This document shows positions 16,962-43,600 of a DNA stretch of 64,000 nucleotides, one piece after another (the first letter of the stretch is position 1; each line of letters opens with the position of its first letter). The notes below the pieces were generated by a model. The model searched no databases, was not told the DNA's origin, and saw only the letters and a list, made by a program, of their open reading frames with translations. The translations under genes and the position numbers were made by a program. This stretch comes from Takakia lepidozioides (taxonomy: Eukaryota > Plantae > Bryophyta): contig CM060731.1 of NCBI GenBank assembly GCA_030704615.1, positions 82,770,001 through 82,834,000 on the forward strand. Direction: 5' to 3'.

Positions 16962-17639
16962 ATGTGGCTTGGTGGGACTTGAAACAAGGTATGTGGTCTG
17001 AAAATAACTGTTTTGTATCATCCAGGACGAAGTTTGAAAGAAAATTTGACTGTCAACAGTGTTGAATGCTGGAATGTATTATTTGGCTGCATCCATTCTT
17101 CAGCAAATGATCATATCTGGTCCATAACAGGCTCCATAGTTGGGGGTTCACACCAATGTGAACCTCTTGTTTTTTTCCCACACTCGTGGGAAAAAACACG
17201 AGTGTTGCACTGAAGCTAGCTCACAGTAGATGTTCAGCAAACTTTTATGTGTTACATGGGGTTAAGTTGCCTTCACAGTTGCCCGATGCATCTATAGTTA
17301 GGGTCATGCAAAGTTTAGGGCACCTGATATTGTTGTCATGATTGAATTTTTGACCTAAGGGACATGTAGCACAAAGTAAAGAAGTTTGGTTCATCTCGTT
17401 GGGTTTGACTTTTGTAGTTGAGTCCCTAAATCTATTGCTTGGTACTTTAGTGGGGGGCTGCTATTTCATGAGCGGCATGAGCATGAGCGGAAAAAAAAAA
17501 AGCATGAGCAGACCATTGTGAGTCCACGGAAATAGGGTTAGGAGGCACGGAAATAGGGTCATGTGAAGTTGGAATGTGGCACCAGTGGACTTGAAATGCA
17601 ACATTTTATTGCAAATTTTGTGGCAAGCCACGTCTATAC

Positions 17640-20600
17640 AAGTGTGTTCTAACTGTCATAGCCGGAATGGGCACTACTCTCCTACACCCTCCGAGGAACT
17701 TGCCCCACCTTCTTCCTCATCCCCCTCATCCCCCTCGTTCTCGGAGCTCTGTGATGCATCAGTTCCACTATGCCTCTAAAAAATCCCGTCCTCTTCTTGG
17801 GGGACTGTCCACCTCACCTCCTGGGAATCTTCTGCGTCTTCTCCCCCACTTTCCTTAGCAGAATCCAACACAAATCTACGAGCCCGACGGGCTCTAATAG
17901 CTGCTGCCTCCTCCCTCATCTTCATTTTCTTGAGGCTTGCCTCGTCTAAATCTGCTGTACACGACTACGTTCGGAACACCTCCTAATGGACACCGAAGCA
18001 AGCCGGGCAGCATAAGTAGGAAGGATCTACTCCCTTTCTGGACTAGGCATGAAATCCCCCCTGGCAAAAAAAGGCACGTTCCTCCTGCCCATGAACTCCG
18101 GTGTAGACGTCCCTCCGGCAGTACTTGGCATCCTACAGTAAGAACAAATCCACTTCAAGAATGTCAATACCAGCACAACCACAAAGGGTTTTCAATGAAA
18201 TAAGAGAGCGGAGGGAGGTGCCTCACAAAATCTGGAGGCAACTTACAATGCCACCACTCACTCGTAAACCGGGGGCTCCTCGGCCTCGATCCCAACTTCC
18301 TCCCCCTGCTCCTTCTCAGATTTTTCCTCATCCTCCGAGGATGCCTCTTCCTCTTTCGGCAGACGTTCAGCCGCTGTAAGTTCCGAGTTGTGGAGGGCAG
18401 TATCTGGCTCGAAGGCGAACACATGCCTGTCGGACAACGTCCCTGCCCACATTGAAGCACCTGAGGAACAAAGCGGGCGGTTAATAGCTTGCGGCATGCA
18501 ATTGCAATCGGGCCAGGGGACAAACTGAGCACGTGAAGGCTTACCCGTGCCGCATGTGAGGTCCAGAATCCGCCCTTGGACATCCGAGCACGTCTCCATG
18601 AGGGTTTGGATGAAAGCAGGGCTCCGGGTCCGGCTGTACCGCCACGGTTTGCCTGTCTTTGTGTCCTTCGGCATACTGGAGTGGGGCACATAGTTGTAGA
18701 GGACATCGTAGGTTACAGGGTCCACAGCGGCATCAACAAGACGACCGTCGTTGCGGAATTTGAACGTAGACCCTCTCTTCACAAAGCAATATGCCTCAAA
18801 CACCAATGTCTGCACATCCAACAAAGAAGGGATCAACTCCAGGGTCTACTTAACATACACCACAATATGAGGTGAATGCAAAAGATTGATAACTTACACT
18901 TTGGCCCTCTGTTCGCAACCCCTGTGTACTGATGTAGAACCATTTTCTGAGGAGGACCGGGGTGACACTTTTCGGTGTCCACCTTGCCACCGCATTCTCT
19001 GTGGTCTTCCCTCTCGTGGCAAGGGCAACCACACATCCACCGTCATCCAGAAGCATCCCTGCCAGCCCAAACCCGGCTTTCCAGTAGTCCTCAGTAAACC
19101 TGTTCCAGGTGGGCACACCATCCAGGCCCTCCAGCAGCTCCCCATCTAGAATGTCGAGGAGAATCATGTCGCAAGCTCTCTCCACCTCAACCCCCCCCCC
19201 GAGTGCTCTTGCAATTCGTGCTCACAGCCGTGAAGAATTCCATCATGGCTTCAAAACCAGGGGTGTCTTTAGGCTCTGTACCGCCAGCCCTCTTCTTGGC
19301 TTTCCCCTTCTGCTCCGCCAGAGACTTGTTGTGTGCCACCTTCTTCGCCCTGGCAGCGAGAGCGTCAAGGAAGCTCTCATTGACGCATTGGATGATGGTT
19401 GGAGGTTCTAGCTTTGGCCTGTGCGTAAACGTCACCGCCGAATACCGCCGTGTAGGCTCGCCCTCAAATGCCAACTTCTTGGCAGAGCCAGTCCCATTCC
19501 GAACTGACTTGGGAACCCGGACGACCGGTGACTAGGTAGGAGCAACAGCAATCGCAGGACCTTGAACAAAGTCGTCGTCCGAGTCACTCTCTTGGGTCCC
19601 CTCCTGCGCCTCCTCCGATGCCCCGATGGTTTTCTTCTTTTTGGGTGTTACTGCACTCACCTGTTTCCTTGTCCTTTTCCTTTGGCCTTTACTCTTCTCA
19701 TGCAATTTCTCCAGAATTCCTGTCTGAGCAAGCTCTGCCGCTTTCCTGGAGTTCGCAAGCGCTTTTGCCTCTTTTGCACCCAACGGAGGCAGCGGAGCCC
19801 GGTTTCGTCGGAATTCAGCATCCAGCTTCAATTGAAACTCGGCAATCACGCAAATGTTCCAGATGCCACTCCTTCACAATATCGTCAGTGTACATGGAGT
19901 CAGCCCCAAGGTTCCTCCATGCCAGGAAGAATGGTGGCTCGAAAGACAGATGACCTTTCTCCAAAAGGGAGAACTTGCAGTACCTGCATTCATGAAAAAC
20001 ACAATGAGGTCCCTGAAATGCATATTCGGCACCATTTTCCCAGGTTGGGGCGGATGTGAGTGGGCCTAGAAATGGAAAAATGGCGCCGAATTTCGGTTTT
20101 CGGTGAGTGCCACCCTAGGGACTTAGCCATCTTGGAAGCCCTGAAATGGAAATTCGGTGCCATTTTTCCCGGTTTGGGCCGAAGATGGCTAAGTCCCAGA
20201 ACCGCAATAGGGCCTAGAACTGGAAAAATGGCGCCGAATTTCCAGTTCAGGTCCAGCCACCCTAGGGACTTAGCCCGAAAATGGCTAAGTCCCTGAACGG
20301 CAATAGGGCCTACAACTGGAAAATGGCGCCGAATTTCCAGTTCCGGGCCAGCCACCCTAGGGACTTAGCCCGAAAATGGCTAAGTCCCTGAACGGCAATA
20401 GGGCCTACAACTGGAAAATGGCGCCGAATTTCCACTTCAGGGCCAGCCAGTCTAGGGACTTAGCCCGAAAATGGCTAAGTCCCTGAACGGCAATAGGGCC
20501 TGGAACTGGAAAACGGCGCCGAATTTCCAGTTCCGGGCCAGCCACCCTAGGGACTTAGCCCGAAAATGGCTAAGTCCCTGGACGGCAATAGGGCCTAGAA

Positions 20601-21960
20601 CTGGAAAACGGCGCCGAATTTCCAGTTCAGGGCCAGCAACCCTAGGGACTTAGCCCGAAAATGGCTAAGTCCCTGAACGGCAATAGGGCCTGGAACTGGA
20701 AAATGGCGCCGAATTTCCAGTTCCGGGCCAGCCTGTCTAGGGACTTAGCCATTTTCGGAGCCCTGACTGGAAATTCGGCGCCATTTTCCCTAACACCACT
20801 TGAGGCCTCTAACATCCTGAAATGCAAGGACTTGAAAGAAAGGCAGCGCGTATGTACATGTACAGAAGGTGCATTGCTGCTTTGTCCGCGTTCGGCTGGT
20901 CGGTGAACTCGTGGCTCCGGCGAGCATCTGCTATCTCCCGAAAGAATAGGTTGGTTTTGTAGAGCATAAAGTACCTCGTCACATAGTCACGTAGGCTCTC
21001 TGCTGCAGGAGATATCTCCATCTTGAACTGATGTGCTTGTGTGTCCAGCTGCTCTTGCGCATTCATCGTCACCTGTGGAGATTCTCCATCAGATCGCTTT
21101 CCTGAAAAAATACAATGAATCCACCCCCTACTAGAGTAGAAGCCCCAAACGAAGCGTAGGGAAGTACCTGAAACCACCATGTCATGCGGTTCATCCACAT
21201 GTCGAATGTGGGGTCAGAGAGTTTGTCCGGTTTGGGGAAACTCCACATGTCCCTGGTACTTTGGGAACCATTCCAGATTTGGAGCCACCGGGTCTGTCCA
21301 ACCACCCAGCATATTCGTAAGCGCCAAACACCACAAAAAGGAGTTGTTGCCACCACAATTTGGTTAAGAATGTATCACCTTTTCTGTTGCATCCACACAG
21401 GATGTGGCTAGACGATGGAGCTTCTCCAATGTCATCGTGGGCTTCAGAGCGCGAGAGTAGTGCTTCCCCACCTCCACCAGAAAGTCGGCACCAAGGGCGG
21501 GATCAGCTATGGCCACGTACTTTACCATCCGCGACTTGTACTTTATGTGGGCCCTCACCTCCGCAGCTTTGACATACGATTCGAGTTCCGGGAGGGTTGG
21601 ATTCTTCTCCTCTGACTCCATGTAGAACCTCCGCGCATGTGCCAAATCCTGCTGTATTTTCGTCTGTCAAGAATGCGCACATAAGATTAAAGATCATGCT
21701 CAACACAATTTCTTCTATTGGGGGAGGAGAGACAGATTAGCTCAACAAAACTATCAGGAGCTTTACCCGAAATATGTAGTCCACCATGGCGTCGACGCTC
21801 AGCCTATACCAGGTTCTGTCTGCCTTTGCCTCCGACTTGCGCAGGAGGTCGGCACTGAGGGAATTGGCAAACTCTTGCACCCCTGCTTCCCGACATCCTT
21901 CACTCGGAAGAGCATATGGGACAAGTTGGTGGCAATGAAGGCATTCTCAGTTACCCTGCA
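17640..21960 (-). pseudogene. 5'-truncated paralog of the ParB-amino-methyltransferase-like gene
   Basis: Exon-by-exon similarity to 34248-37818: AHARRFYMESE, WMNRMTWWFQ, IQCVNESFL, CDMILLDILDG, YSRTRSPAFIQTLMETCSDVQGRILDLTCGT|GASMWAG; frameshifts. Confidence 0.8.
20020..20790. repeat. Intronic tandem array, ~95-bp unit with two palindromes
   Basis: CTAG at 20262, 20357, 20452, 20547, 20642, 20737. Each unit has AGGGACTTAGCC-N7-GGCTAAGTCCCT and AACTGGAAAATGGCGCCGAATTTCCAGTT. Confidence 0.92.
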
Positions 21961-22341
21961 GTGCCACATTTCCATCAAACAATACTGAAATGGGAATTTC
22001 CATCATATATGAGGTGTCAAGTTATTTTACCACTAGTGTGAAACTAGCTAGGAAATAGCTAGCTTTTACATATTGATATTTGGGATTGGCCCAAGTGTCA
22101 ATCCAGGGGTCAAGGCAGATTTAGGCCCTGGAGTGGTTATCTTCACGGCAAGCGCGGGAGGCTCATCTTTCTCGAGTTGAGCCTCACCGCGCCTAGCTAT
22201 GGCGCCGTAGTGTGGATTCCCCATGGCGTGGGGTGCACTTGGCTTGACTTGTATTTGAGTGATGAGGTTATATATGCATGAGTTTATGCTTCAGCTTTGT
22301 GAGCTCGCATGAGCTTGTGCTCGTATTCTTCTTCTTTATCA

Positions 22342-24950: not shown

Positions 24951-27202
24951 AGTGAGCTGTGTGGGCCTGTGCTGGTCTGTGGTGGCCCGTGTTGACCTGT
25001 GGATGGCCTATGCTGACTCGTGGAGGCACTGGTGGACTAAGGACTGACATGTGGTCTGGAAGGCCGAATTTTGAAGCTCGTGGAGGGCGGTTTGAGGAGT
25101 ATCTTCATGATATTCCCATGGTCATGCAAGTTCAGGTGTAGGCTATGTTAGGAACTTAGTATTCCAAACCATAAGCCGCAACAGGTTCTCTACCCGGTTA
25201 CCTTGTGGAGAGGGGGTTAGGGACATGTTCATGACCGGTTGAGTGTCAACACGGAGGTGCCACTAGTTGCTGGGGACAGTGCCGGTTCGAGCACTAGCGA
25301 TACTAGTGGGTACACGAGACGAGGTGTGCGGTTTAGGCCACCTTCACCTCCTGTGTCTTCCACAGAAGGTTCTGATTCGGATTGTGAATCAGGAGGGCTC
25401 ATACCGGCGGTGCAAGTTGTTTCTTTGCCATTGTTGTGGGACACAATGGAGGAGATGTATGGAGCTACCAAGGGGCCACGAAGGTACTCTGGGGCGGTGG
25501 GCACCATTGAGTTGGATGATTTTATCCAAGAGTTTGATAGTTGGTGTGATTTGCAGCAAATGCGCAATCCACAACTATTTACGCCGTTCATGGCATGGAA
25601 AGGGCTGTTTCAGCACCTTGAGGGGCCGCCTATGGATGATTACCATGAGTTCAGGCGGGGGCATGAGGTTGAGATCGAGGAGTGAAGGATGTACTGGTCA
25701 CCCAACTATGTCTCCATCACTAGGGGCACTAGAGCCACGAGGGCAATGGCTACACCTGCCGCTACACCGGCAGCTTCAGCAAGTAGCAGTGGGACAGGTG
25801 GTACAGTAGCTACGACATCCACCCAAGCTACTACCGCACCAGCACTAGCACCCGTGCCTGCCTTCAACCCTGTTGTGGAGTTCTTCGAAGAGTTGAGAGG
25901 GAACTACCAAGGGGTGAGGACAGAGAAGTTGCGGAGCTTGCAAGAGTTCCAACGGAAGCCGACCGAGAGCTTGAGGGAGGCTTTCACTCGCATGAGGCGC
26001 TTGATAAATGTAACCCAAGGGGTTACGGAAGCTCAGGCAGTCCAATTCTGGTATGGGATATTGGACAAGGAACTGAGGAGAAGGGTGCGGGATGCAACTC
26101 TCCTACAAGCGGCCCAACCCACCTTAACAAATGTGTTTTTGCTGGCAGAGCGGATAGAGCTCAACATGGTGGAGGAACGAGTGGTCATGGTGGGATTTGC
26201 TAAGGAGACACCACGGGGTAGTGGTGCTCCTAGCCAACCACTACCTCAACGTGCTCAAGGCAACAAGGGGGCTCAGGTGAAGCTTAGGGAAGGGCAGAGA
26301 GGACCTCAGATGCAGGGGTCTCTCCCTTCATTTGCTGGCCAACAACGGGCGGATGTGGTGTGCTGGACATGTGGAGGACCCCATGTCAAGAAGGATTGCC
26401 CAGAGGGAGGCAAAGGGTCGGCACATGCACAGCCTGCACAGTTGCAGTGTGGGCATTGTGGCAAGCACGGGCATGAAGAGGCCCAGTGTTATAGTTTGCA
26501 TCCTGAGTTGCGCCCAGGCCAGTTCCAAGGGAACAATGGTGGCCGGGGGCGAGGTGGAGCAGCCCAGAGAGGACGAGGTGGCCAGCCACGAGGTGCAGGC
26601 CAAGGGCAAGCTCAACGTGGCCAAGGACGCGGAGGTCAGGGTGTTGACCAAGGCATGGCCAACCGGCTTCAGCAGCTAGAGCAGAGGCTCGCTGCCATGG
26701 CTACAGCTCAGGTGGTACCGGCTCTAAGGCCGGATGGTCCACCTCCTGTTCCTGAGGGAGGAGATATGGGAGGCATGGGATTCATGTGTGGAGCAGCACT
26801 ACCACTAGTGCAGGTGGAGTCTGCTGCAGCCGTGACTCGAGGAGCAGCACGAGTTCCTGAGCCACGAGGTGCAGAGGTGGAGTTGGATCCACAGCGTGGG
26901 GAGGCAAGCCGTCAGGCTAGGCTTCCTCAGTCATTCACATTGGCGGAGACAGTGTCGACGCCATCCATGGCACCTAGTTCTCGCCCGACTATTACCGAGG
27001 CGGAGGTTACTATGCCATTGGGGAGAGCTACACGGGCAACACCACTACCTAGTGTTGCCAAGGCTACGGCAGCTAGTGTGCTGTTAGGAGCGGCCACATC
27101 TGTGTGCCAGGCTCCATTGTTCTCGGCTACCATGATTGCGACGCCGGGAATAAGACCAGCTGAGGTGTTCAGGCTGGCAGCTACACTCTGTGAGAGTGGG
27201 GA

Positions 27203-30129
27203 CTTTGCATGGACAAATCTTCCTGTAAAAGTAGGAGCATGGACAGCCCCATCTGGATTCCTCCTTATCATCTCTAAACAACGTTGCCGTGTATCCACAC
27301 GAATTGCGGAACACCTTCCTCGAAACGACGGCTTTGTGCGAGCAATTCTCCACTGTGAGGCAGACACAGTCGTCTCCACAATGGCTTGGCCATACTGCAT
27401 AACAGCGGGCGGAATGTGGGGCAAGGGAGCGGTGGGAATTTGTTGCACGAAATCCCCGGTTGAAGGCGACGGCGATCTGGAATTTCTTGGGCTTCCACTG
27501 CTGGAAGACACATTGTGCGGCAACATGACGGGACCTCGAGGTGCTGTCCGAATGTTCCTGTCGGATCTCCAGGAATCCTCTTCGCACCCGGGTTCCTCTT
27601 CAATCCTCCGCCTGACAGGGCGAGTCCGGACGTCCCCCTCTAGGTGTTCACCTCTGCGGTGCAGAGGCGTCCCTTTGATCTTCTCTCGCAATGCTGTCAC
27701 CCATTTCACTGGATTCTTGGACCTCGAAGCTGTTCGTACCAACAATTCCTCCCTGTCCGGCCCAAAGCCCCATTGTTTGCCGCTCAGGAACTTGTAGTAC
27801 GTGGCTTGCTGCATGATTGCTCTGTCGATGTCCTCCGTTGTGGCCGTGACTACGTCCACCAGATGTGCGGCAGAAGACGCTCGCCAGGAGGAGTGGACCG
27901 ATTCTGCCATATTCGTGTTCGGCATGTCCATGTCGGAATCCAAGCACCGCTCCTAGAAGGACACAAACAATGGTGAGGGACCAATCGAAATGTCCGTAAC
28001 AGAAAGACAAATGAACGAAATTGACAGCAGCCTACCTCCCGCATGTACTGTCCGAACTGTCGATACCGAAAATGCCACCACCCCAACCAGCTGTGCAATG
28101 CTCCCAGATTGGTTGTCTCCACTGCACCTGACGTGTTCCACCAAGCCTCGATGATAGCAAACTTAACCTCCGCGTCATCAAATGTGGGTGCATCCTTCCA
28201 CGCCGTACAAAGGACACGGTGTTCAGCCTGGAATGAGCTAGCAACAAATTTGGTAGTGTAGTGGGATAGACTCTGCATCCAATGGAATCCACAGGATCTC
28301 TCTTTCCCCTCCATTGGAACATTGGGGTCCTCACCGTACACACGCCGCACCGCTGCCCAGTTGGCCTGAGCGTTGTCTGCCATGAATCCCCTGAAATTGG
28401 GCTCTGGCAATCCCGCCCTTGCCATCTGCTGGTTTATGCCCTCCCACAGATGCATCTCGGACTGTGTGTCCTCCCCTTTCATCTCGCAGATTGCAATCGT
28501 CATGAGCCTCTTGGAGTGATAGTCATAAACATGCGCACCCATAGTCACCCACTGATGGTTTGTAATTCGCTTGATGTGATCAAACATCACCCAAGCATTC
28601 GACAAGTTTCCAGTTGTCATGCGAGTGACCAAGTCGACTCCACTCCCAGGCCCACACGTCGACATTTTGAAAATGTAACAACGATCGGATTCGCTGCCTT
28701 GCCCTGGAAACCTGCTACCTTGGATGTAGTCATATCCAGTCATTCGTTTCACCTCCAGGATTGAGTACATGTCCGACCCCCTGCCGAACTCCTGCTTGCA
28801 AGATACGATGTGATTCCGCACATTCGGACTACAAACGTGCGAGACGGACTCCAAGAGGTCACGCATCTCGTCTTCGGTCAAGGGCTCTCAGTCGGAACCA
28901 TCTTCAGACATGATTTTGCCAAGAGCAATCTTGTGGGCTGCCTTCAGCTGAATCTGCTTTGGTCTGGCTCCGGGGCTCAATTTCACCTCCTCTTTTATGA
29001 TGTCGTGTGCTTCCTGCACAGCCTCACGCATGTTGCCTCTCGCCAAGGGGTGGCAGTGGACCCCAACGTGTATGCAAGCTCTAGTCAAGTCCGGGAGTAA
29101 ATGGATAACGTAATATTGCTTGGCTCTACACATGGACATGCACGTCGGTGGTTCTTTGCAATGTGCACACTTGAAAGAACCCGCAGGAGCTTGGCTGGAG
29201 ACAATGAATGGATGATGCGTTGTGCCAGTCCAATCCGTCTCGTTTCTCCGCCCTCCTTTGGAGAGAAAGTGGAAGCAGGTGGGATTGAGGCACCTCAGCT
29301 TCCCCGCACAGAGGACATATCGTACACGAACACCATCAGCAATTTTCGTGCTACTGGTCTTCGTCACACACCAGGGGTGTCCGTCATGCTTTCGATCCAT
29401 GTCTGTTAACATCCCGGAGGCTTTCTTTGACGAAGAAACAGGTGGAAACTCGAAGATGACATTGCCATCGACTTCGGGAGGCAGAAAAGTTACCTTTCTG
29501 ACTGGGAATTTGGCATAGTCGAGAGCAGCCAGCTCGGAGCGAGAACCATCGAGGTGATGTTGTCGTAGGAGCTGCACAATGGACCGGGTTGGAGTTATGC
29601 TCGAGGGCACATGCGTAGCACCTACAGAGACGTCCATGCCGGATTTGAACGACCGTGTGGAGGACATGGGTACCTCAATGCAATCATCTTCCTCGTCGGA
29701 AATGTCGAATACGTCCACACGAGAAGCTATGGAGGGTCTTGACGGTCCAGGTCGGGAATGATTATCGTTGCATACCTCTCTGTTGGCAGTGGCCGCCTCT
29801 CGGTTTCCGGACTCCTTTGTGGATGGTGTGGGCAGCAACTGATTCGGAAAGGGAATGGGCATTCCCACAGCTCGGTACAGGATGGTGTCTGACAGGGGAA
29901 CGTGCCATTCGATTCCGCAACCTCCGTCGTTACCTAGCACGACAATGGTCTCGTCAACCTGTCCAGGAACATCCTTCCTTTCTTCTTCCAAATAAACTGT
30001 GCCCGGTTTGAGCTTGAATTTGGAACAAAGGTAAGTTTCAGTCACTCTGCAAATTCCTCCCTCGTTTGGGATCCAGGTTCTCCCAAGTTGCGGAGGACAG
30101 CAAACTATAGCGTAGGAATTCGGAGCCAT
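27203..30129 (-). pseudogene. MULE-type DDE transposase with N-terminal GCM/WRKY-like zinc finger
   Basis: C..C..C/CAHC..C/HCHP finger; WVMFD, FMADNAQA, CGFH (CxxH), NMAESVH. One in-frame TGA at 28888-28890 joins ORFs 28888-30153 and 27850-28881; 83-bp GT-AG intron 27953-28035; C-terminus cut at 27202. Confidence 0.8.
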
Positions 30130-30556
30130 CGGAACACCGCACGGAGTTGGCAAGTGCGAGGTTCAGTATAGCGACAGACCAAGGCTCACAGGCACCATCT
30201 AAGTGGATCTGCGGAGTCCATCGACGATTGGAAGTCGCACATTGAAGTGGAAGTATTGTTTCAAGCTACATGCATGAAGGTGGGAGGTTTGATTCCATAG
30301 CCAGTGAGTATGACAATGATGGCCGATTCGGCGACGAAATAACATCTCCTGACAGTTTCTCCTGAGGGTGGATCCAGCAGTATTCTCGGTGCAGACAGGA
30401 ACGTTCGCACTGACAAGTGCCAGGACTGCTGGTTAAAACGGTCAGACAACCAAGTTGTGCTCATCAAGACTGGCCGCAATTGTGTTGTTTCGGAACAATG
30501 CAACCCATTGAGGTTCCAGATTTCCCGTCCCGAGTGATTCTTTCGATTGCTGGTGG

Positions 30557-32270
30557 ACGGAAATACGGCGCCGCATTTCCGTATTGCATCTTGGTCATGC
30601 ACCAGAGCGACGGAAATGCGGCACCGAGTTTCCGTCCGGGGGAAACCTTTATACTCTCCAAAACGGAAATGCGGTAACGCATTTCCATCCAGCAAGCACG
30701 GTATGTGAAGGTGGAACGGAAATGCGGTACCGCATTTCCGTTCTGATTGAGATTTATGAACAACGGGAACAGAAATGCGGCACCGCATTTCCGTCCGAGT
30801 CGCACTTTTCCGACATTTCAGAACGGAAATGCGGCGCCGCATTTCCATTTTGTATCTGATGCATGGAGCTGAGGGATAGAAATGCTGCAGCACATTTCCG
30901 TCCTTAAAAGACATTCATACTCTCCAGAACGGAAATGCGGTACCGCATTTTCATTCAACAAGCACGGTATGTGAAGGTGGAACGGAAATGCGGTACCACA
31001 TTTCCGTTCTGATTGAGAATTATGAACAACGGGAACAGAAATGCGGCACCACATTTCCGTCCGAGTCGCACTTTTCGACATTCCAGAACGGAAATGCGGC
31101 GCCGCATTTCCATTTTGTATCTGATGCATGGAGCCGAGTGCGATTCCGACACCTTCATACAGCGCAATTCCGACCGCTTGAGACATTCATACTATCCAGA
31201 ACGGAAATGCGGCACCGCATTTCCGTTCTGACTGAAAATCGTGAACCATCTGAACTGAAATGCGGCACCGTATTTCCATCCGAGTCGCACCTACCATCAT
31301 TCCAGAACGGAAATGCGGTACCGCATTTCCGTTCTGACTGAAAATCGTGAACCATCGGAACTGAAATGCGGCAGCGCATTTCCATCCGAGTCGCACCTCC
31401 CAACATTCCAGAACCGAATGTATTAGATTCAAAAGGGAAATGCGGCACCGCATTTCCGTTCTGATGAAATATCCTGAAACATCGGAACTGAAATGCGGTA
31501 CCGCATTTCCGTCGGAGTCGCACCTTCCGACATTCCAAAACGGAAATGCGGCGCCGCATTTCCGTTTTGTATGTGAGGCATGGAGCTGTGGAACGAAAAT
31601 GCGGCACAGCATTTCCGCCAGCGTCAGACGTTAATACTCTACAGAACGGAAATGCGGTACCGCATTTCCATTCTGACTGAAAATCGTGCGCAACGGGAAC
31701 AGAAATGCGGCACCGCATTTCCGTTCGAGTCGCACCTTCCGACATTCTAGAACGGAAATGCGGCGCCGCATTTCCGTTTTGTATATTGGGCCTGGAGCTG
31801 TGCTACGGAAATGTGTTGCCGCATTTCCATCCATGTGAGACCTTCAAACTTTCCAGACCGGAAATGCGGCACCGCATTTCTGTCCAGGTGAGACCTCTAT
31901 ACTTTCCCGAACGGAAATGTGGCACGGCATTTCCATTCATCAACTAACGTATGTGAAGTGGGAACGGAAATGCGGTACCGCATTTCCGTTCACATTGAAA
32001 ATCATGAACCACGGGAACTGAAATGTTGTGCCTCATTCCCGTCCCAATCGCACCTTTCGACATTCCAGAACGGAAATGCGGCGCCGCATTTCCCTTTTGA
32101 ATCTCATACATGGAGCTGTGGGACGGAAATGCGGCACCGTATTTCCGTTCAACAACTAAGGTATGTGAAGGTGGAACGGAAATGCGGTGCCGCATTTTCT
32201 TCCAACAAGTACGGATGTGTAGCAGAGTGATGGTACTTAACGGAAATGCGGCGCCGCATTCGCATTTTCG
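30557..32270. repeat. Array of ~32 26-bp palindromes ACGGAAATGCGGYRCCGCATTTCCGT with ~27-bp spacers (53-bp period, ~5-unit higher-order repeat)
   Basis: Read directly from the sequence; spacers recur (e.g. CAAGCACGGTATGTGAAGGTGGA, CCGAGTCGCAC...CATTCCAGA); lies between the divergently oriented transposase and ParB-MTase genes. Confidence 0.93.
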
Positions 32271-32699: not shown

Positions 32700-35600
32700 A
32701 TGCCGAAGGGGAGGAAGCAGATGCGTCTACAGGAGGAGATTGCCATCTCCGAGCAGCAGGCCACTCAGGCAACCCAGCCACCAGTGAGAGCTCCATGCGA
32801 TCGGGCTGCGCGCAGCTGATCGAGCACCGAACCCCCCATTTTGCTTCTGTAATTCTTAGACTGAATGCTAGGAGACTTGAATGCAGAACATGTTTGCATG
32901 CCTAACAGGAAAGGTGGACGTGCTGGAGGGATCGCAGGAATCCGAAGAGCCGCAGGAAGAGTCCGAGGAGCTAGCTGCAGCACGTACACCCACCCGATCC
33001 CCGAGCGCGGGTATTCCTGCCGGGCCTAGCCCTCTGCGATTCAAAGACGCGTCTTCGAAGGGCAAGTTCAAAGTCCCAGAGATCGACTCGCGTTCTTCGA
33101 TCATGGAGAATCGCCAGCAGGGGTCGGGCCCTTCTCCAGCAAAGTCGAAGAAGAAGCAGCCCGTCCCTCTACTGGCTTCTGAACCGGCTCAGGCCGATTC
33201 ACCCCCCCCAACGCGAATGAAGCAGCAGGGTAGAAGACAGATTCAATTGCAGCAGACACCTTCACCTGCAAGGATGAGGAAGCAGAAGGCAATCAGGGCG
33301 ACGGGCGAACAATCTCCCGCAAAACCGCTTCCACGAGCTGAAGCTCAGTTCCTGGAGGATTTCCCGCCTGCAGATGTTGGGGCCGACTCTGCTGCAGCGA
33401 AGGCAATGGGATCGACCGTTGATCTCGATTTGGTACCGGAGGAGGGTGCTGCCGCTGAACGTTCGCAGCAGACCTCACCACCGATGAGCAAGCAGGCCCG
33501 GAGGAGGCCTCTGCAATGGCAGAATTGCCCGCAGACAGGCCCCAGAGTGCAGCTCCAGTTGAGGATGCTCCAGCTGCTCAGCCACTACCGGCACCTACAG
33601 ACATGTCTCCGGAGGATTTCAAAAGTGCAGCGGATAAAATGTTGGAGGAGACACACAGTAGCATTGGCAGAGTTCTGGGCAGCAGGGTATTCCAGCGGAC
33701 TCTTCGAATCCCACTCTGTCGCATGGTCTCCCTTCCCATCGTCAGGCAGGCCCTTCCCGGAGATGTGGATAAGCTCAAGTTCGCATTTCGAGAAGGGTAC
33801 CGTCTGGGATCGGCAGCGTTTTACGTTTCCATTGAGAATGAGGACGGCGAAACCCGTGGACCCACTGCCGATGAATTGTCAACGTGGGATACCCACTGGC
33901 ACACTCGCAACCACGAATTCGAGGCGACGCTGAAGGGTGATCCCGACTTCGGCCATATGTCGGGTAAAATGTTCTTTGTGTGGGACGGGAATCACCGACT
34001 TCTCGCCTGGTGGGAGTACATCAAGCAGAACCATGCCAAGCACATTGGCTGGCATTACATGGTGGAGTGTGTCATCCTCAAGGTGAAGGCGGCAGACTCC
34101 TCCCTGCTCAAGAATGCCATGGCGGACCTCAACTCGTAAGATACTCATACCCTCCCTAGCACGTTCGAAATGCGGTGCCGCATTTCGGTTTCCATTCTGG
34201 TTTGATTCCGTGCTTCCGTGTACTGAACTGGAGAGTGTGCCTTGCAGGGTCACTGAGAATGCGTACGTGCATACCCACATGGCACATATGCTGTACAGGG
34301 TGAGGAAAACTGGTCTCACTGATCCGCAGATGTTTGCGGAAATGCTGGAGCCGAGCTCATTCAGAAAGCCGTTGCAAAAACAGACCGGACATGGTATCGT
34401 CTCACTATGGATGGAATGGTGGAGGTGATATACGAAGTAAGTCGTCTCCAATTTCCCTCTGCTCATCCTTCCCCATTTTCAGTAATGTTTCCACATGAAT
34501 CGAATGTAACGCTTCTGCATGTTTTTGTTGGCAGTCAAACATCAAGCTGGATTTGGCCCATGCCAAACGCTTCTTCATGGAAAGTGAGGGGCAGGTCAAA
34601 ACGTTGCAGTCATTGACTGAGCACTTGAAGGAAGCCGGTGTCAAGTCCAGAACCAAATACAAGTCAAAGCTTGTGAAGCTGGTGGCAATTGCAGATCCGG
34701 CACTTGGAAAGGACTTCATCCCCGAGATTGCAAAACACTATTCTCGGGCCATGCAGCCGACCATGCAATTGGAGAAACTGCATCACCTCTCAACGGCATG
34801 TGTGGAGGCGAAAGAGAAGGTGAGGTTTCAATGCACTGAAGTTCCTTCCTAGCAATAGCCACTCTCTTCCAGCTCCTGACATTGGATCGGAAATGGCAGA
34901 CACGGTGGCTGTCGATCTGGAATGCATCCGAGAGCATAAGGACAATGTGGTCTTTTCCACTCGAAGTTTCCGACCCTGCAGTGGATGTGGCTCAACCGTA
35001 TGACTTGGTGGTTCCAGGTAATTCAAGGTACTTCCCCAGATTTGCTTTTCTGACATGAATTCCCTGAACTGCTACGTGACAATGCATTTGGGAATCGCAG
35101 GTAATGTCGAATGCGAAGGAGCAAGTCGTAATGCACACAAATTCGTTCGGCTTGTACGTCAAATGGGATGGAACACAGACATTGGAAGACTACGTGACAC
35201 GTTTCAGATGTGCGTACAAGGACAACCTTTTCGCCAGAGAGCTACAGACAGCAAGAAGGAGCGTGGAGTTTACACATCAGGAGGGAGCGGGGAAAGCTGC
35301 AATGCGAATTGTTTACAGGTGAAGCACAGCTGCCCTTGTATGCGAAGCCTGGTTACGAGGTTTGTCTCGGAAATGCGGCACCGCATTCGCATTTTATGTT
35401 TTCGGTGGCACTCTGCCAGTAGGTTGGTCTCAACTTTTGCTCACGCATGCTGACTGCCTTGCAGGTATATGAAATACGTGCTCCTTCAGACAGGGGCCCT
35501 GGCTCAAGAGCCCCCGTTCTTCATGGCTTGGACCGTGGCGGGCCCAAGCTGTGTCTACACACCCGAGATGCAGAAACAATGGCATCCCGCGCATCTCGTT

Positions 35601-37818
35601 GGATGCCCGTGGTACCTGGACATGTCTGGCGGTATTGTTGACGAGTCTGAGAAAGATCTGCACGCCTTGGCAGAAGAGAAGAGAAAGGAAAGACGTGTCC
35701 CTGCTGGGCCAAAGTCGGCAAAGGAATCTGCTGCTCTGGAAGAATCCAGAAAGGCAGCTGAGATGGCACAAAAGACGGTGGATGCAGCTGTGCAGGCCCA
35801 ACAGAAGGGGTCGAAGAAGAGGACTCGCCAGCAAGGAGCAGCTGTTGTGACACCCGCCAAAACGAAGAAGCAGAAACAGCCTGTTCAGGAAGAGGGTGAG
35901 GAAGAGGACTCCGATGGAGACTTTGCAACCAGCCCACCCCCCCAAACGCAGGCTGCCTCCCCTGTGCCCACCGTTGTCACGAGAGGCACGAGAACTGGCT
36001 CGGCAAAGAAGGCACTCTTCAACCCCCCAGGGGGGCACCCTTTCGAGCCGGTGGAAATGAAGAGGCCGAAAGTGGCTCCCGAAACAGTAGTCCAGTGTGT
36101 AAATGAGAGTTTCTTGGCGGCTTTGGATGGACGGGCAGCCAAGTTGGCATACATGAAGACCATGGAGGGTCTGAAGGGCAGAGCACTGAAGAAGGCGACT
36201 GCCGAAGAGCCTTCCGACACCCCAGGATTTCAGAATATGGTCTCGTTCTTTGAGAGGGTGTGTGCAGACAAGGATTGTAGGAGGGGCGGAAATGCCACCG
36301 AGTGGTCTTGCGATATGATCATCTTGGATATTCCGGACGGAGAGCCTGTGGAAGGACTGCAAGCTTTGCCATCTTGGAACAGGTACTCGGAGGACTTTTG
36401 GAAGAAAGGATTCGGGCTTGCCCGCATGGTGTTGGACGACAGAGGCTGTGTGGTTGTCCTGGCGAGCAGAGGAAAAAACACTCAGACAGGAATTGCGAAG
36501 TGGACCCGCAAGAGCGCCGTCCCGATTCTGAAAAAGAAGTGGACGTGCATCAACACACTGGGCCTTCGGTCGGAAGGGAAGAAGGTGATTACGACACTGG
36601 CACTCGTCCATTCATTTGCTTGGGTGTTTTCAAATGCGGTGCCGCATTCGGTTTCTAATCGTTTTCCCCCTGTGTATGCAGACGAAGCAGTTCGATGCAT
36701 ACTGCTTTGTGAAGGAGAACTCCACCTTTGCTTTCCGGAAGGAGGGAGGAAAGGTTGACCCGAACTGCGACCCACTCGATTACGACGTTCTGTTCAACAA
36801 CGTTCCCAAGGAACTTCTCCCTCATAGCCTCACTTCAACGGAACCCCTGCGGTACTCACGGACTCGGAGCCCTGCCTTCATTCAGACAATTATGGAGACA
36901 TGCACAGACGTGGAGGGCACAGTGCTCGACCTCATCTGTGGGACAGGTATGCAGAATCTTGATCTCTGCTGTTCTGCAAATTCTCGTTAGGATGTAGTTC
37001 GCAACATCTGAAGCGCCATGTGGTAATGTGTGGATGGCATTGTAACAGGTGCCTCAATGTGGGCTGGGCGGTTTTCCGACCGGCACCTCTTTGCCTACGA
37101 GGAGGATTCATCCGTGTGGGGATCCCATCTGGAGGGGCTGCAACGGAATGTGAAGGCTCCCGACAGAGCGGAAGTCTCCTCGGATTCGTCGGAGTCCGAG
37201 GAAGACACAGTGGACATTGATGCGGAGGAGAACCCGGAATACGAGTGAGTGCAAACATTGTAAGTTTGCAAAGCCTTCTGGGTCATTTATGTCAAACGAA
37301 TTTCCCGACTGTGGTTCTCATTAGTCTCGTTGATGATTGTCATGTGCAGGATTGCAGGGTCCGGGTCGAAACATGTAGGGCCTACACTTCCTGCCAGGAA
37401 GAATGTCCCGTTCTTTGCGAGGGCCGACTTCATGACGAGCCCGGTGAGGGACTACTCCCTTCCTAGTTATGCAGCTAAACTCGCAAATACAGCGATTAGA
37501 AGAAGTGAGAATCCCAGTAAAGTAGAGCAGATTTTGGAGAGGGCTAGGGAGGACAGAAGGATAAGGAAAGAGTTGGCAGCAGCTCAGACAGGTAGACGGG
37601 TACGAAAGTACATATGTGATTCAGCGGATGAGAGCGACGCAGACAGGGAGGAAGACGACCCAACGGAGGTGAGATGGACAGTTCCGCAAGGGGAAGATGG
37701 GATTTTCGAAAGCCTGGCCAACGAGCAGTCCGCTGGAGATGAGAGAGGCACTGAGGGGGTGGAGGAGGAGCAGGACAGTCTAGAACAGGATGAGGATTCG
37801 GATGATTTTCAAGATTAA
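32700..37818 (+). CDS. Multi-exon protein: low-complexity N-terminus, ParB/Srx-like domain, unknown helical region, beta-class N4/N6 DNA methyltransferase-like domain, acidic tail (about 2 frameshifts)
   Basis: FFVWDGNHR (DGNHR 33984-33998); CDMIILDIPDG (motif IV position, 36327); SRTRSPAFIQTIMETCTDVEGTVLDLICGT|GASMWAGRFSDRHLFAYE (motifs X-I-II). Exons ~32700-32768, 32888-34135, 34248-34436, 34534-34820, 34982-35018, 35101-35318, 35465-36584, 36682-36946, 37050-37244, 37350-37818. Confidence 0.72.
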
Positions 37819-37954: not shown

Positions 37955-38705
37955 AGAAATGGGGCACCGCATTTCCAAAATTTTGGCAACTCTAAGAACC
38001 TCTTTTGGAAATGCGGCACCGCATTTCCAAAACAGGGGAGGGACTAAATTTTCCATTTCAATGTTGGCATAGTAAAAAGTAATCTGAATTGGAAATGCGG
38101 TGCCGCATTTCCAAAATTTCCTTTGTCCACACGCCAGTTTTGGCCTCTCCCGCTCATTGCATGGATGCCACCACGCTTACAGAGGTCGAACAAGGAGGTC
38201 AAGATGGCGGGATTGAAAATGCGGTGCCGCATTTCAGTATTGGGGATGGTCGTTGTTCGAACTGCAGGCCCATCAGCAAAAATTGGCACCGCATTCCATT
38301 GTTAAAAAAAAGTCGATGACGGACATGGAAATGCGGCGCCGCATTTCCAGAACGGACATCGCAATTTGTCCATTTGCAGACCCTCTCTCGGAAATGCGGT
38401 AACGCATTCCATCGCGCTGGTCGGAAATGTCACACTTTTCGAAGTGTTGTACGGAAATGCGGCACCGCATTCCCTTGTCCAAAAAGAAGTTTCCATTGCC
38501 AAGCTGGAAATGCGTCGCCGCATTTGCAATGCCAACCTCGTTTTCTGACCAATTTATAGACCCGTGTTGGTATTTCGTGTACCTGGACGGAAATGATGCA
38601 CCGCATTTTCTTGTCCCACATGGAAATGCGGTGCCGCATTTCGATCCCGACATGGAAATGCGGCGCCGCATTTCGATGCCGACATGGAAATGCGGTGCCG
38701 CATTT
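37955..38705. repeat. Second cluster of GGAAATGCGGYRCCGCATTTCC palindromes
   Basis: About 14 copies downstream of the ParB-MTase gene, with less regular spacing. Confidence 0.88.
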
Positions 38706-38963
38706 CAATGTCCGACATGGCGTTACTCTGGTATATTCTTGACACATGACTCACATACCGGTTACTCTGCTATATTCATCCGGACAGACACATTGTAGAA
38801 ATGAGACATCAAATTGTAAACAGTGGGCCAATTCCGACAGTTATTCAACACAATGAAACACAATCATACAGAAGTGAGGTACGATGGGTTTATTGATCGG
38901 ACACGATGTCTCACATTTACCAACTGCAGACAAAACTAAGCCCTTCCTCCTTCTACATGGGCT

Positions 38964-39542
38964 TCACCAAGTCGACGGAACTTCGATACCCCTCAAAACA
39001 AGCTCATCACTGCTGCGGCACCTCGAGGTAAACTGCAATTCGGTCGTTCTGCTGCCCTTGCTGGAGCCGACGACAATGTCATGTCCATCAATGATACCAC
39101 CATCATACATTGACAAGGTCACTGTGGGCCTCATGTGCCCGTGCGATTCGTCTTCGCAACTCAGCCGAATGTCTCCATACACTGGAAGAGCGGAGTGATC
39201 TGCACGTATATAGTTTTCCCCGGTGCCGTCCTCCCTGGTCCACTGGCAGCAGTTCCAGCGCCAAAGCGAGGCCGTGCGTGATCTGTCCGGCATCCCTTTC
39301 CAGCTTGGTATATCGAGGTCAACAATTTTCAGGACCCACGGACCGCATTGACCCTCGCCCTCACCTCGCTCAAAGCGGTAATAGCCCTCCAGATACTCCA
39401 TTGCGCGCAAAGACTCTTGCTTGATTCCAGCAGCGTCTGTGAAAACAGAGAGCCAGACAATGATGTCTCCTGATTCTGGTTTGAACATAGCATAATCGTG
39501 GCCATGATAAGGGCAGTCGGCTGGATTTCGGCGGCACGACAT
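38964..39542 (-). CDS. Orphan transposon protein A (~190 aa, unknown domain)
   Basis: Intact ORF MSCRRNPADCPY...RWNCCQWT...YGDIR...DGGIIDGHDIVV...ELVLRGIEVP; paralogous to 40092-40654. Confidence 0.65.
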   Translation of the reverse strand: MSCRRNPADCPYHGHDYAMFKPESGDIIVWLSVFTDAAGIKQESLRAMEYLEGYYRFERGEGEGQCGPWVLKIVDLDIPSWKGMPDRSRTASLWRWNCCQWTREDGTGENYIRADHSALPVYGDIRLSCEDESHGHMRPTVTLSMYDGGIIDGHDIVVGSSKGSRTTELQFTSRCRSSDELVLRGIEVPSTW

Positions 39543-40091
39543 CTTGAAAAAGAGTAGCGGAGTACGCTCAATGACAGCAGCTCCCGGATGGAGGAGGAGC
39601 ACCGCGGTGGCTGGAAAAAGTTCAAGCTAACGCTGCAATTCCTCACAAACACTCCAGGGCACATTTAAATTTCCCCCCTACAGGATCCTGGACCGATGAA
39701 GATTGGCTGCTGCATGAATGTAGCCGTTTCAGTTTCCTACCCTGCCATGCAAACTATGGGCACTCACTGCCAGGTGGGCCGATAGCCACTGGACACGACG
39801 AAGTCCATCCCCTCTTCGATGTAAATGCGGCGCCGAATTTCCATCCGGGGGGATGGACTTCGGTGGCAGATCTCAAACTATAACTTGTTGATGAGAAAGA
39901 TGTATGGGTTCATCCACCGCTGGCGTGATGAACACGTTCCACCTCCGTCGGTGGGTACGTGTGACCCAGATGCTCCATTATTGGAGGCCGGACTGCTCTT
40001 CCGCTTCGTATCATTTCCAAAATCTAAGGGCTTCGTAGCTGTCCGCAAGGTCATCGGCATCCAAGTCGTCCTCAGGTCCTCCTTTGCAAGG

Positions 40092-40654
40092 ATGCGTGCT
40101 TCCGGAACCGGGACGACTGCCCCTTTGGAGGCATCGATTATGCAATGTATTCGGCCACATCGGGAGACATTGTTATCTGGTACACAGATTACAGAGAAGA
40201 TACTGGTTCGATTGTGGAAACATTGGTGGCTTTTGAGTATATCGTAGGCCACTACGCCTTCGAGCGGGGTGACGATCTTGGTCTGAGGAGTCCGTGGCTC
40301 CTGCGCATCCTCGATTCCGATTTTCCCAGCTACGACGGTCACCCATGCAGAAGAAGGCGCACTGCTATGCTGTTGCGGTGGAACTGCTGCCACTGGACGT
40401 GGGTGGACTCCATCGGAGAGACCTATTCTCCTCGAGGAGTGCGCTCCTCTTCTCCATTGTATGGGGACATTCGCATTGGTGTGGACGACGAAAACGTGAA
40501 GATTTCCATATTCGATGGTGGTATGATTGAAGGGCAGGACATTGTGGTGAACATCACTAGGGGCGGTACAACGGCTGCAATCGACTTTACATGGAGGAGC
40601 CCCATGACTCATGAGCTAGTTCTGAGAGCAGTCGAAGTCCCATTGACAACGTGA
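40092..40654 (+). CDS. Orphan transposon protein B, paralog of A (1-nt indel after the likely ATG)
   Basis: CFRNRDDCPFGGIDYAMYS...RWNCCHWT...YGDIR...DGGMIEGQDIVV...ELVLRAVEVP. Confidence 0.65.
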
Positions 40655-43600
40655 CTTGTATTCAGTAGGCACAGGGCTCAAGATTTGATGGCACAATCAG
40701 CACAGTAGACGTGCTTCAAATGCAATTCATGTGGATCAATAAAAACCTCATTGTGCCCTCTTTTTATTCTATTCTGTGTCCATCGTTCCGAGAATGCGTC
40801 ATTGCTCATTTCGTTTGGGATTGGGAGTGTGGGTGGATTTTGCAAATGGCTGGTAGGCTGAAATGGGCCCCCATTGTACAGAGCAGTACCACCCTACCAT
40901 TCGCGAAACATTGCCTTTCAATATATAATTCTAAATAACATTGCCGAACCTCCTTCATCGGGACGTCCTTCTCCCCCTATGACCGTGGCACCCTAAACCC
41001 TATTCCCGCGGACACTCATTTCCGGAAAATAGTGCTGCTCATGTTTTTTTCCACACTTACGACTCTGCTCATGGCTCATGCCGCTCATGGCTCATGGCTC
41101 ATGAAATAGCAGCCCCCCCCCGTGGCCTTTGGGGCTGTGATGGGCTGTGAGGGGCTGTGACGGGCTGTGAGGGGCTGTGCTGGGCTGCGCCGGTGGCCTT
41201 CGGGGCTGTGAGGGGCTGTGAGGGGCTGTGCGTAGTGGCCTGTGGGGCTGTGACGGGCTGTGCCCAGTGGCCTGTGGGGCTGTGACGGGCTGTGCGGGGC
41301 TGTGACAGGCTGTGGTGGGCTGTGCCCTGTGGCCTGTGGGGCTGTGACGGGATGTGACAGGCTGTGGCGAGCTGTGACGGGCTATGAGGGGCTGTGACAG
41401 GCTGTGCCCAGTGGCCAGTGGGACTGTGACGGATGTGACCAGTGAGCTGTGTGGGCCTGTGCTGGTCTGTGGTGGCCCGTGTTGACCTGTGGACGGCCTG
41501 TGCTGACTCGTGGAGGCACTGGTGGACTGCCTAAGGACTGGCATGTGGTCTTGAAGGCCAAATTTTGAAGCTCGTGGAGGGCGGTTTGAGGAGTATCTTC
41601 ATGATATTCCCATGGTCATGCAAGTGAGGGAAGAGAGGAGAGGAAGAGTGTTGGGATGAGGGCATGTTGGGGTTAGGCATTGCTTTAGCTTCTCTTCCAC
41701 CCTCTCATTAGGCCAAGACCTTTCCGTAGGTGGAGGCAAGAGTCAGTCCGGGTTTGGGCTGGGGTATCATTGCAGGAGCAAAACCGTGGAGTTGTTTTTG
41801 GTGTGGGGGAGTTGTCGCTCTGATTTCTTGTGTTTGGATCCCCTCCATACATGCATGCTTGACTGTGCGCCATGCTAGTTTTGTGTAGGCGCTTGTTTTT
41901 ATAGGTGATTGGTCTGGATTTGATCACCGGCCAGTCCTAGAGCATGTTGTCGATGGTGAGATTGGGGTGATGACCAGCCAGACCATCATTAGTTCTCCTG
42001 TGGTGAGGTTGGAGGTAATGACCAGCCAACCATAGGAGTGCTTGCGGTGGATGCAGGTACAGGTGTAGGCTATGTTAGGAACTTAGTATTCCAAACCATA
42101 AGCCGCAACAAGTTCTCTACCCGGTTACCTTGTGGAGAGGGGGTTAGGGACATGTTCATGACCGGTTGAGTGTCAACACGGAGGTGCCACTAGTTGCTAA
42201 GGACAGTGCCGGTTCGAGCACTAGCGATACTAGTGGGTACATGAGACGAGGTGTGTGGTTTAGGCCACCTTCACCTCCTGTGTCTTCTACGGAAGGTTCT
42301 GATTCGGATTGTGAATCAGGAGGACTCATACCGGCGGTGCAAGTTGTTTCTTTGCCATTGTTGTGGGACACAATGGAGGAGATGTATGGAGCTACCAAGG
42401 GGCCACGAAGGAACTCTGGGGCGGTGGGCACCATCGAGTTGGATGATTTTATCCAAGAGTTTGATAGTTGGTGTGATTTGCAGCAAATGCGCAATCCACA
42501 ACTATTTACGCCTTTCATGGCATGGAAGGGGCTGTTTCAGCACCTTGAGGGGCCGCCTATGGATGATTACCATGAGTTCAGGCGGGGGCATGAGGTTGAG
42601 ATCGAGGAGTGGAGGATGTACTGGTCACCCGACTATGTCTCCATCACTAGGGGCACTAGAGCCACGAGGGCAGTGGCTACACCTGCCGCTGCACCGGCAG
42701 CTTCAGCAAGTAGCAGTGGGACTAGTGGAACTGGTGGTACAGTAGCTACGACGTCCACCCAAGCCACTACCGCACCAGCACTAGCACCCGTGCATGCCTT
42801 CAACCCTGTTGTGGAGTTCTTCGAAGAGTTGAGAGGGAACTACCAAGGGGTGAAGACAGAGAAGTTGCGGAGCCTGCAAGAGTTCCAACGGAAGCCGACC
42901 GAGAGCTTGAGGGAGGCTTTCACTCGCATGAGGCGCTTGATAAATGTAACCCAAGGGGTTACGGAAGCTCAGGCAGTCCAATTCTGGTATGGGATATTGG
43001 ACAAGGAGCTGAGGAGAAGGGTGCGGGATGCAACTCTCCTACAAGCAGCCCAACCCACCTTAGCAAATGTGTTTTTGCTGGCAGAGCGGATAGAGCTCAA
43101 CATGGTGGAGGAACGAGTGGTCATGGTGGGATTTGCTAAGGAGACGCCACGGGGTAGTGGTGCTCCTAGCCAACCACTACCTCAACGTGCTCAAGGCAAC
43201 AAGGGGGCTCAGGTGAAGCTTAGGGAAGGCAGAGAGGACCTCAGATGCAGGGTCTCTCCCTTCATTTGCTGGCCAACAACAGGCAGATGTGGTGTGCTGG
43301 ACATGTGGAGGACCCCATGTCAAGAAGGATTGCCCAGAGGGAGGCAAAGGGTCGGCACATGCACAGCCTGCACAGTTGCAGTGTGGGTATTGTGGCAAGC
43401 ACGGGCATGGAGAGGCCCAGTGTTATGGTTTGCATCCTGAGTTGCGCCCAGGCCAGTTCCAAGGGAACAATGGTGGCCGGGGGCGAGGTGGAGCAGCCCA
43501 GAGAGGACGAGGTGGCCAGCCACGAGGTGCAGGCCAAGGGCAAGCTCAACGTGGCCAAGGACGCGGAGGTCAGGGTGTTGAAGAAGGCATGGCCAACCGG

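Follow-up and report, generated by a model that had tools for sequence, protein, structure and literature searches.

A conserved accessory gene with ParB and methyltransferase folds in a lineage of land-plant Mutator-like transposons

Introduction

Why would a plant DNA transposon carry, beside its transposase, a gene for a protein with a ParB-like and a DNA-methyltransferase-like domain? The question is raised by a locus in Takakia lepidozioides (Bryophyta), within a stretch of 64,000 nucleotides that we call the window (GenBank assembly GCA_030704615.1, contig CM060731.1, positions 82,770,001 to 82,834,000, forward strand; coordinates below are those of the window). The original prediction, made from the letters alone, placed a gene for a fusion of a ParB/Srx domain and a beta-class N4/N6 DNA methyltransferase (MTase) inside a Mutator-like element (MULE), at 32700..37818 on the plus strand. 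Our analysis confirmed that this land-plant gene encodes a ParB/Srx-fold domain, a helical middle region and a beta-class amino-MTase fold, predicted to be joined in one spliced protein. An old lineage of land-plant MULEs carries it as its regular second (accessory) gene, transcribed away from the transposase. The copy in the window is a dead member of a high-copy family that is probably at least partly transcribed.

The design is not categorically new; accessory genes combining ParB and methylase are already known, as predictions, from algal transposons. A 2011 study by Iyer is said to give green-algal examples. In Ectocarpus, the large DNA transposon Sola1-1_Ec32 has, opposite its transposase, a predicted gene for a 1104-aa ParB-like and N4/N6 DNA-methyltransferase protein, whose proposed role is to bind its own element and modify it (PMC12477816). 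The arrangement is like the one described here but the host is a brown alga and the transposase is of the Sola-1 type, in contrast to land plants and a MULE; the two were compared by description alone, and no named algal protein was among the matches listed for the accessory protein. In Bostrychia, ParB-oxygenase and methylase-SET accessory genes occur with inverted-repeat arrays on Plavaka elements, and homologs are found on Chondrus Mutator elements (10.1101/2025.02.11.637652). These red-algal genes (PAG2 and PAG3, of Plavaka, Mutator and Zisupton elements) also place a ParB accessory gene beside inverted-repeat tandem arrays, with a PF01555 methylase in the same cassette. However, the ParB-2-oxoglutarate oxygenase and the methylase-SET are encoded by separate genes, whereas the land plants have one spliced protein. 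ParB-N6_N4_Mtase fusions are enriched in phages (PMC12704722). Such fusions, considered together with CcrM, M1.HpyAVI and M.BceJIV, provide the two folds in the same order and the beta motif order; the land-plant gene differs from the phage fusions by its nine introns, its degenerate motif IV and the 550 residues inserted between its two domains.

The passages covered of Iyer 2016 (PMC4738411) do not describe the land-plant clade. A literature search with incomplete coverage turned up no publication on this MULE family of land plants, the family-wide loss of the motif IV aromatic or the palindrome series described below. What appears to be new here is this family, its degenerate active site and its palindromes, within a design recognised only recently.

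Results

The accessory gene in the window is a pseudogene of a young, high-copy family

We found that a ten-exon model accounts for the gene from the ATG at 32700 to the TAA at 37818, with nine GT-AG introns of consistent phase. The exons, all on the plus strand, are 32700-32783, 32914-34135, 34248-34436, 34535-34819, 34900-35017, 35101-35318, 35465-36584, 36682-36946, 37049-37244 and 37350-37818; the model is weakest at exon 1 and at the first acceptor. The motifs on which the original prediction was built are all present: VWDGNHR (33978), DIPDG (36327), TRSPAF (36862), VLDLICG (36922) and RHLFAYE (37081). Its roughly ten exons also hold, but it missed three frameshifts (near 33469, 34350 and 34985), and a single frame of 1389 codons is obtained when these are read as X. 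The bases missing at all three frameshifts are present as insertions in other genomic copies (contigs from DNA runs of the host). Thus, the family has intact members, and the window copy is one of its pseudogenes.

Sequencing runs of the host indicate that this family is very high-copy and young: approximately 42,700 contigs of run X1 map to a 5.5-kb stretch, mostly at 95-100% identity (a depth that does not equal copy number). Contig 26 of run X9, a run taken as RNA by guess, skips introns 4 and 5 at GT-AG and has frame-restoring bases. This spliced contig is probably RNA, and the host family is probably at least partly transcribed. No contig among those of the host runs bridges the ParB exons and the MTase exons; intron phases and annotated homologs suggest that the two are on a single transcript. 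Pfam searches with single window exons gave no match, and the fold assignments below rest on structure models, family profiles and a full-length homolog from Riccia.

The protein combines a ParB/Srx fold and a beta-class amino-MTase fold

The ParB/Srx-fold domain (33690..34135, plus strand) has the DGNHR motif (Box II, GxxR), a conserved PxVR and a C-terminal D-x-N. DGNHR, which has the GxxR of Box II, is invariant across 53 sequences. Searches with the ParB exon gave 52 homologs at E < 1e-18 and 1171 cluster representatives at E up to 0.001. An AlphaFold2 model of the domain had a predicted local distance difference test score (pLDDT) of 80, and a VIA structure search with it returned members of the ParB/Srx superfamily in all of the top eight places (Z 5.8-8.1; best unrelated chain 3.2), including KorB (Z 8.1), PadC (7.9) and sulfiredoxin (Srx; 7.2). 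Foldseek agreed, and three members had a weak match to the DGQHR family. A sequence profile search of PDB with the ParB exon found nothing. The ParB/Srx assignment is borne out by the structure matches and the invariant DGNHR. Low-sensitivity searches of IMG/VR, GTDB and plasmids found no prokaryotic or viral relative of the domain. In a ParB tree the window copy is on a long unresolved branch, which neither places the host nor separates vertical from horizontal history.

A model of 33549-34136 also matched a fungal DUF3723 cluster in the Atlas (template-modelling (TM) score 0.51). DUF3723 is a common cargo of fungal Starship elements. ParB-like accessory domains may thus be shared across eukaryotic mobile elements.

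The middle region (34248..35650, exons 3-7, plus strand) contributes approximately 350 residues that are conserved in the second window copy, in Riccia and in the metagenome loci. It had no family match in the Atlas, in a PDB profile search or in PHROGs, and is a candidate for the part that recognises DNA or mediates dimerisation.

The MTase-like domain is at 36300..37140 (exons 7-9, plus strand), with motif IV (DIPD) followed by motifs X-I (TRSP..DLICGTG) and II (FAYEE). We assessed its fold through P0205 of Riccia sorocarpa, a full-length annotated homolog of 1207 aa, with the window exons included in the alignment. BLASTP aligned P0205 with the window protein at E 1e-21 in the ParB and middle regions and at E 3e-9 in the MTase region. 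P0205 also matches Pfam N6_N4_Mtase (PF01555) at E 5e-5, below the gathering score. The family MTase profile matches positions 9-212 of CcrM, nearly its whole length (E 1.6e-8), and also M1.HpyAVI. A model of the Riccia domain (pLDDT 75) superposes on CcrM (Z 18.0, TM 0.71) and also on M.BceJIV, MboII and PvuII. Both the beta-class amino-MTase fold and the motif order IV...X-I-II were thus confirmed. N6-adenine enzymes ranked first in the structure search with N4-cytosine enzymes close behind, so that the matches do not call the target base.

The original prediction had also drawn a parallel to the N4-cytosine MTase of Marchantia. Marchantia DN4MT1 is an active host gene with TSPPY (10.1101/2021.02.12.428880). 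It and bdelloid N4CMT are, like the present family, bacterial-derived beta-class amino-MTase folds in a eukaryote, and that much of the parallel stands. In contrast to DN4MT1, the land-plant family has D-x-P-x in motif IV and a ParB domain and is found in transposons. It resembles the D-type (DPPY/DIPY) and has no TSPPY or SPPY; identity with DN4MT1 was rejected on motif and architecture.

The gene has a conserved position beside a MULE transposase and is under selection

Head-to-head with the accessory gene, at 27203..30162 on the minus strand, is a MULE-like transposase, which bears out the predicted context. Its top family matches are all MULE (Atlas feature matches 0.92), and it has the motifs FDH, FMAD and CxFHW; a Pfam search of the window transposase gave no match. 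It has an in-frame stop (28888-28890), and its C-terminus is cut at 27202 by a Gypsy fragment.

The same divergent arrangement was found in the liverwort Riccia (L013, L096), in the ferns Adiantum nelumboides (L095) and A. capillus-veneris (L097), and in the metagenome contigs L001, L009, L100, L049, L053, L057, L071 and L073/74, which we infer to be of moss or Sphagnum origin. Not all of these loci are independent. Three complete Riccia elements of 9.7-16 kb are bounded by target-site duplications (TSDs) of 9, 9 and 10 bp, within the 9-11 bp of MULEs. They end in short imperfect inverted repeats, as in MULEs without terminal inverted repeats, and not in long ones. One 9.7-kb element (L094:6577-16250; 9-bp TSD) has an intact accessory gene and palindromes and no transposase match within the element.

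Purifying selection acts on the MTase and helical exons. When the two window copies are compared, these exons have nonsynonymous divergence (dN) of 0.26-0.55 and synonymous divergence (dS) of 1.4 to saturated; between L001 and L009, dN/dS was approximately 0.25-0.45 in the MTase exons and approximately 1.2 in the linker. Together with the fixed layout across lineages, this upholds the claim that the gene is maintained and was not randomly captured. The proposal that it is cargo of a plant cut-and-paste transposon stands insofar as the gene is in a MULE; however, an old lineage has conserved it as an accessory gene, and it is not recent cargo.

Part of the argument for maintenance had been a second element (17451..22015, minus strand). 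It does keep exons 3-10, several of them identical in length (189, 285 and 265 nt), and the MTase motifs (DILD at 19155, TRSPAF at 18629), and it is cut before the ParB exon, at approximately 22015, by LTR-like (long terminal repeat) sequence. But it is itself a pseudogene, broken by stops and frameshifts.

That both window copies are pseudogenes, and that many homologs are decayed, would fit a gene with no role for the element: a passively carried capture, as in Pack-MULEs, or a domesticated host gene. Against this, a liverwort, two ferns and probable mosses all have the gene placed and oriented alike with respect to the transposase, and there is purifying selection. Riccia has dozens of paralogs of the accessory gene, and no single-copy host version was seen. 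Passive carriage is largely refuted by the layout, the selection and the complete Riccia elements, and we regard it as very improbable.

Most intact subfamilies have their own non-coding palindromes

We found 45 sites of a 22-bp palindrome, GGAAATGCGGYRCCGCATTTCC, in the window element. Thirty are in an array with a 53-bp period between the transposase and the accessory gene (30559..32263) and 13 are downstream of the gene (37955..39842). The remaining 2-3 are single copies in introns 2, 6 and 7 (34166, 35369 and 36632; span 34166..36655), with none in exons. Neither 7.1 kb of coding DNA nor 20 shuffles contained the palindrome. The second element has a different but related palindrome, in an array with a 95-bp period inside intron 6 (20020-20790).

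Most of the intact subfamilies examined have a non-coding palindrome of their own: TAGCTTCGGTACCGAAGCTA in L001 and L009, CCTCGGYRCCGAGG in L005 (~70 copies), ATGGTCGGGTCCGACCAT in L101, TTCGGCGCCGAA in L018, and CCGGCGAGNCTCGCCGG or GGCGGACTCCGCC in Riccia. Most share the core CGG-N2/3-CCG. In L005 (1-9900 and 11700-16050) the ~70 copies are those of a 127-bp palindrome-bearing unit, upstream of the ParB-MTase gene and also inside it; within 10 kb no transposase was found.

The ends of the elements behave differently. The right end of the window element (41037..41121, plus strand; the left end is lost) consists of GCTCATG repeats followed by AAATAGCAGCCCCC, and both window elements share the terminal motif (41098 and 17455). 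Terminal repeats are constant between subfamilies whereas the internal palindromes change, and the Riccia terminal repeats differ from the Riccia internal palindromes. Thus, there are two classes of site.

Alternatively, the palindromes may be transposase-binding sites. The ParB-MTase protein would then help transposition in the manner of mudrB or TnpA, by bridging the element or loading on it, and would have no epigenetic role. The transposase N-terminus (28891-29610, minus strand) has a conserved Cys/His zinc-finger pattern that by eye is like WRKY/GCM, and the window half-site ATGCGGY resembles ATGCGGGT, which we take to be a GCM site. Transposases can also activate cognate copies themselves (bioRxiv 10.64898/2026.08.24.746577). 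However, profile searches did not confirm a GCM domain in the transposase, the palindromes are internal and intronic, and the ends have other repeats that are conserved between subfamilies. In addition, L094 and L005 keep the gene and the arrays without a transposase match. We consider a pure helper role quite unlikely.

Motif IV has lost its aromatic residue in nearly every lineage

The original prediction had noted that DPPY is replaced by DIPD and DILD in the two window copies, and this alteration holds across lineages. Motif IV is DIPE, DMPD, DYPE, DVPE or DLPD in metagenome loci, DLPT, DMPS or DMPT in Riccia, and HLPT or DVPF in the two Adiantum species. That is, the catalytic (D/N/S)PP(Y/F/W) was not found, and the aromatic is absent in every lineage except for one fern copy. 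In amino-MTases the flipped base is stacked against this aromatic, which is important for catalysis. A phage methylase match has DIPY, so the change amounts essentially to the lost aromatic. Other residues persist: the Asp of motif IV and a Trp downstream of it, Lys or Arg in motif X, the Asp and final Gly of motif I, and the Glu of motif II. This pattern fits retained binding of S-adenosylmethionine (SAM) and DNA as judged from the residues. The Phe and first Gly of the SAM motif I, FxGxG, are variable. Divergence within the MTase alignment was too great for it to serve in scanning loci.

It is also possible that the MTase domain is active with a remodelled pocket. The protein, guided by ParB, would then write N6-methyladenine (6mA) or N4-methylcytosine (4mC) on its own element, for example on the CG/CCG-rich palindromes, as a self-licensing mark. 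The persisting residues just listed are compatible with this. The phage DIPY, in an enzyme annotated as a DNA methylase, is one residue from DIPD/DIPE, and A. nelumboides keeps DVPF. Such a function has been proposed for the algal proteins (PMC12477816), and the ratio of observed to expected CpG is higher in the element (0.72-0.78) and the array (1.35) than in the flanks (0.52-0.56). However, most lineages have D, E, T or S in place of the aromatic, the His of HPTQKP is absent, and FxGxG is degenerate (DLICGTG, DCTASTG, DWNASTG). One fern copy has HLPT, and CG/CHG transitions are raised. Writing of such a mark is, in our judgement, unlikely.

Discussion

The reading to which we give about an even chance is that the accessory protein is a VANC-like factor for self-recognition and anti-silencing, with a non-canonical methylase fold. 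The folds, the transposase-side layout, the selection, the private non-coding palindromes and the L094 element lacking a transposase match argue for it, and there are precedents in VANC and VirB. VANC binds motifs in introns and in intergenic and terminal non-coding DNA of VANDAL MULEs of Arabidopsis, and hypomethylates them (PMC5735166). As here, it is an accessory gene of a MULE, and its family-specific non-coding motifs evolve as tandem repeats. In contrast, no ParB or MTase fold is reported for VANC, which recognises a 9-mer that is not a palindrome and has a demonstrated function, whereas the land-plant family is known from sequence. VirB is a ParB-type load-and-slide anti-silencing clamp (PMC10770331). 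ParB/parS, KorB and VirB share with the land-plant family a ParB fold with GxxR and repeated palindromic sites.

In such an anti-silencing role, the protein would bind the non-coding palindromes of its own subfamily. Its ParB fold, by analogy to ParB, KorB and VirB, would be a nucleotide-gated clamp that loads at these sites, slides and spreads along the element. Cognate copies would be kept transcribable against host silencing by 5-methylcytosine (5mC), as VANC does for VANDAL. Selection maintains the MTase fold, yet its motif IV aromatic is gone, and so the fold would probably serve mainly as a SAM-binding module for DNA recognition or base flipping, with little or no canonical methyl transfer.

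Several results weigh against this reading. Sequence searches, which could miss a divergent helix-turn-helix (HTH), found neither an HTH nor another DNA-binding domain in the middle region. The architecture of canonical ParB clamps (central HTH, C-terminal dimerisation domain, ParA) was not found, and no locus has a ParA; in this the land-plant loci differ from ParB/parS, KorB and VirB. Clamp activity is lacking in many proteins with a ParB fold, and many bind a different nucleoside triphosphate or none at all. Such binding was absent in 17 of the 28 tested, and nucleotide preference is unpredictable (PMC12704722). No palindrome array was detected in L100, in the Adiantum loci or in decayed AT-rich loci. 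The A. nelumboides copy, with DVPF, retains the aromatic. Finally, CG/CHG transition rates in Riccia and metagenome copies are 2-5 times the CHH rate. The elements are thus methylated much of the time and do not stay clear of 5mC for good. As a test for protection from 5mC, the mutation spectrum gave a negative or uninformative outcome.

A more specific form of the anti-silencing proposal, which we put forward as doubtful, is that seed-free land plants have a eukaryotic system of the parS/ParB type. In it, a nucleotide-gated sliding clamp encoded by the transposon would load at private palindromes, and the repurposed MTase fold that it carries, by reading or flipping CCG/CG cytosines or by writing a mark other than 5mC, would shield the element from silencing. 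If this is true, it would provide an experimentally tractable ParB clamp on eukaryotic chromatin.

Few sequence-specific anti-silencing factors encoded by transposons are known, and the algal ParB-methylase accessory genes are predictions in organisms that are hard to test. The land-plant family extends that design to a liverwort with intact copies and to many protein subfamilies paired with their own palindromes. This pairing makes a binding code, clamp activity on chromatin and 6mA/4mC writing directly testable. The protein may explain how the elements reached high copy number, could confound surveys of 4mC and 6mA in seed-free plants, and might yield a tool for sequence-specific epigenome editing.

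Other features of the window

The window element also has two divergent paralogous small open reading frames (ORFs; 38967-39626, minus strand, and 40028-40651, plus strand) of approximately 210 aa and 46% identity. They had no family match, were absent from the related loci searched and are specific to the window element. Two Gypsy segments that are 97% identical (23900-27202 and 41122-44135) flank the element. At 27202 the left one runs straight into the truncated transposase; a deletion or an assembly junction is the likely cause. A run of N (16455-16960; an assembly gap) is just left of the second element. By eye, a Gypsy pol-region ORF at 45447-46448 has motifs like those of C5-cytosine methyltransferases (ENV, RxRxWW), with no Pfam match. 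At 50936-51445 (minus strand), among host genes, is a TauD-like dioxygenase exon that looks bacterial by eye.

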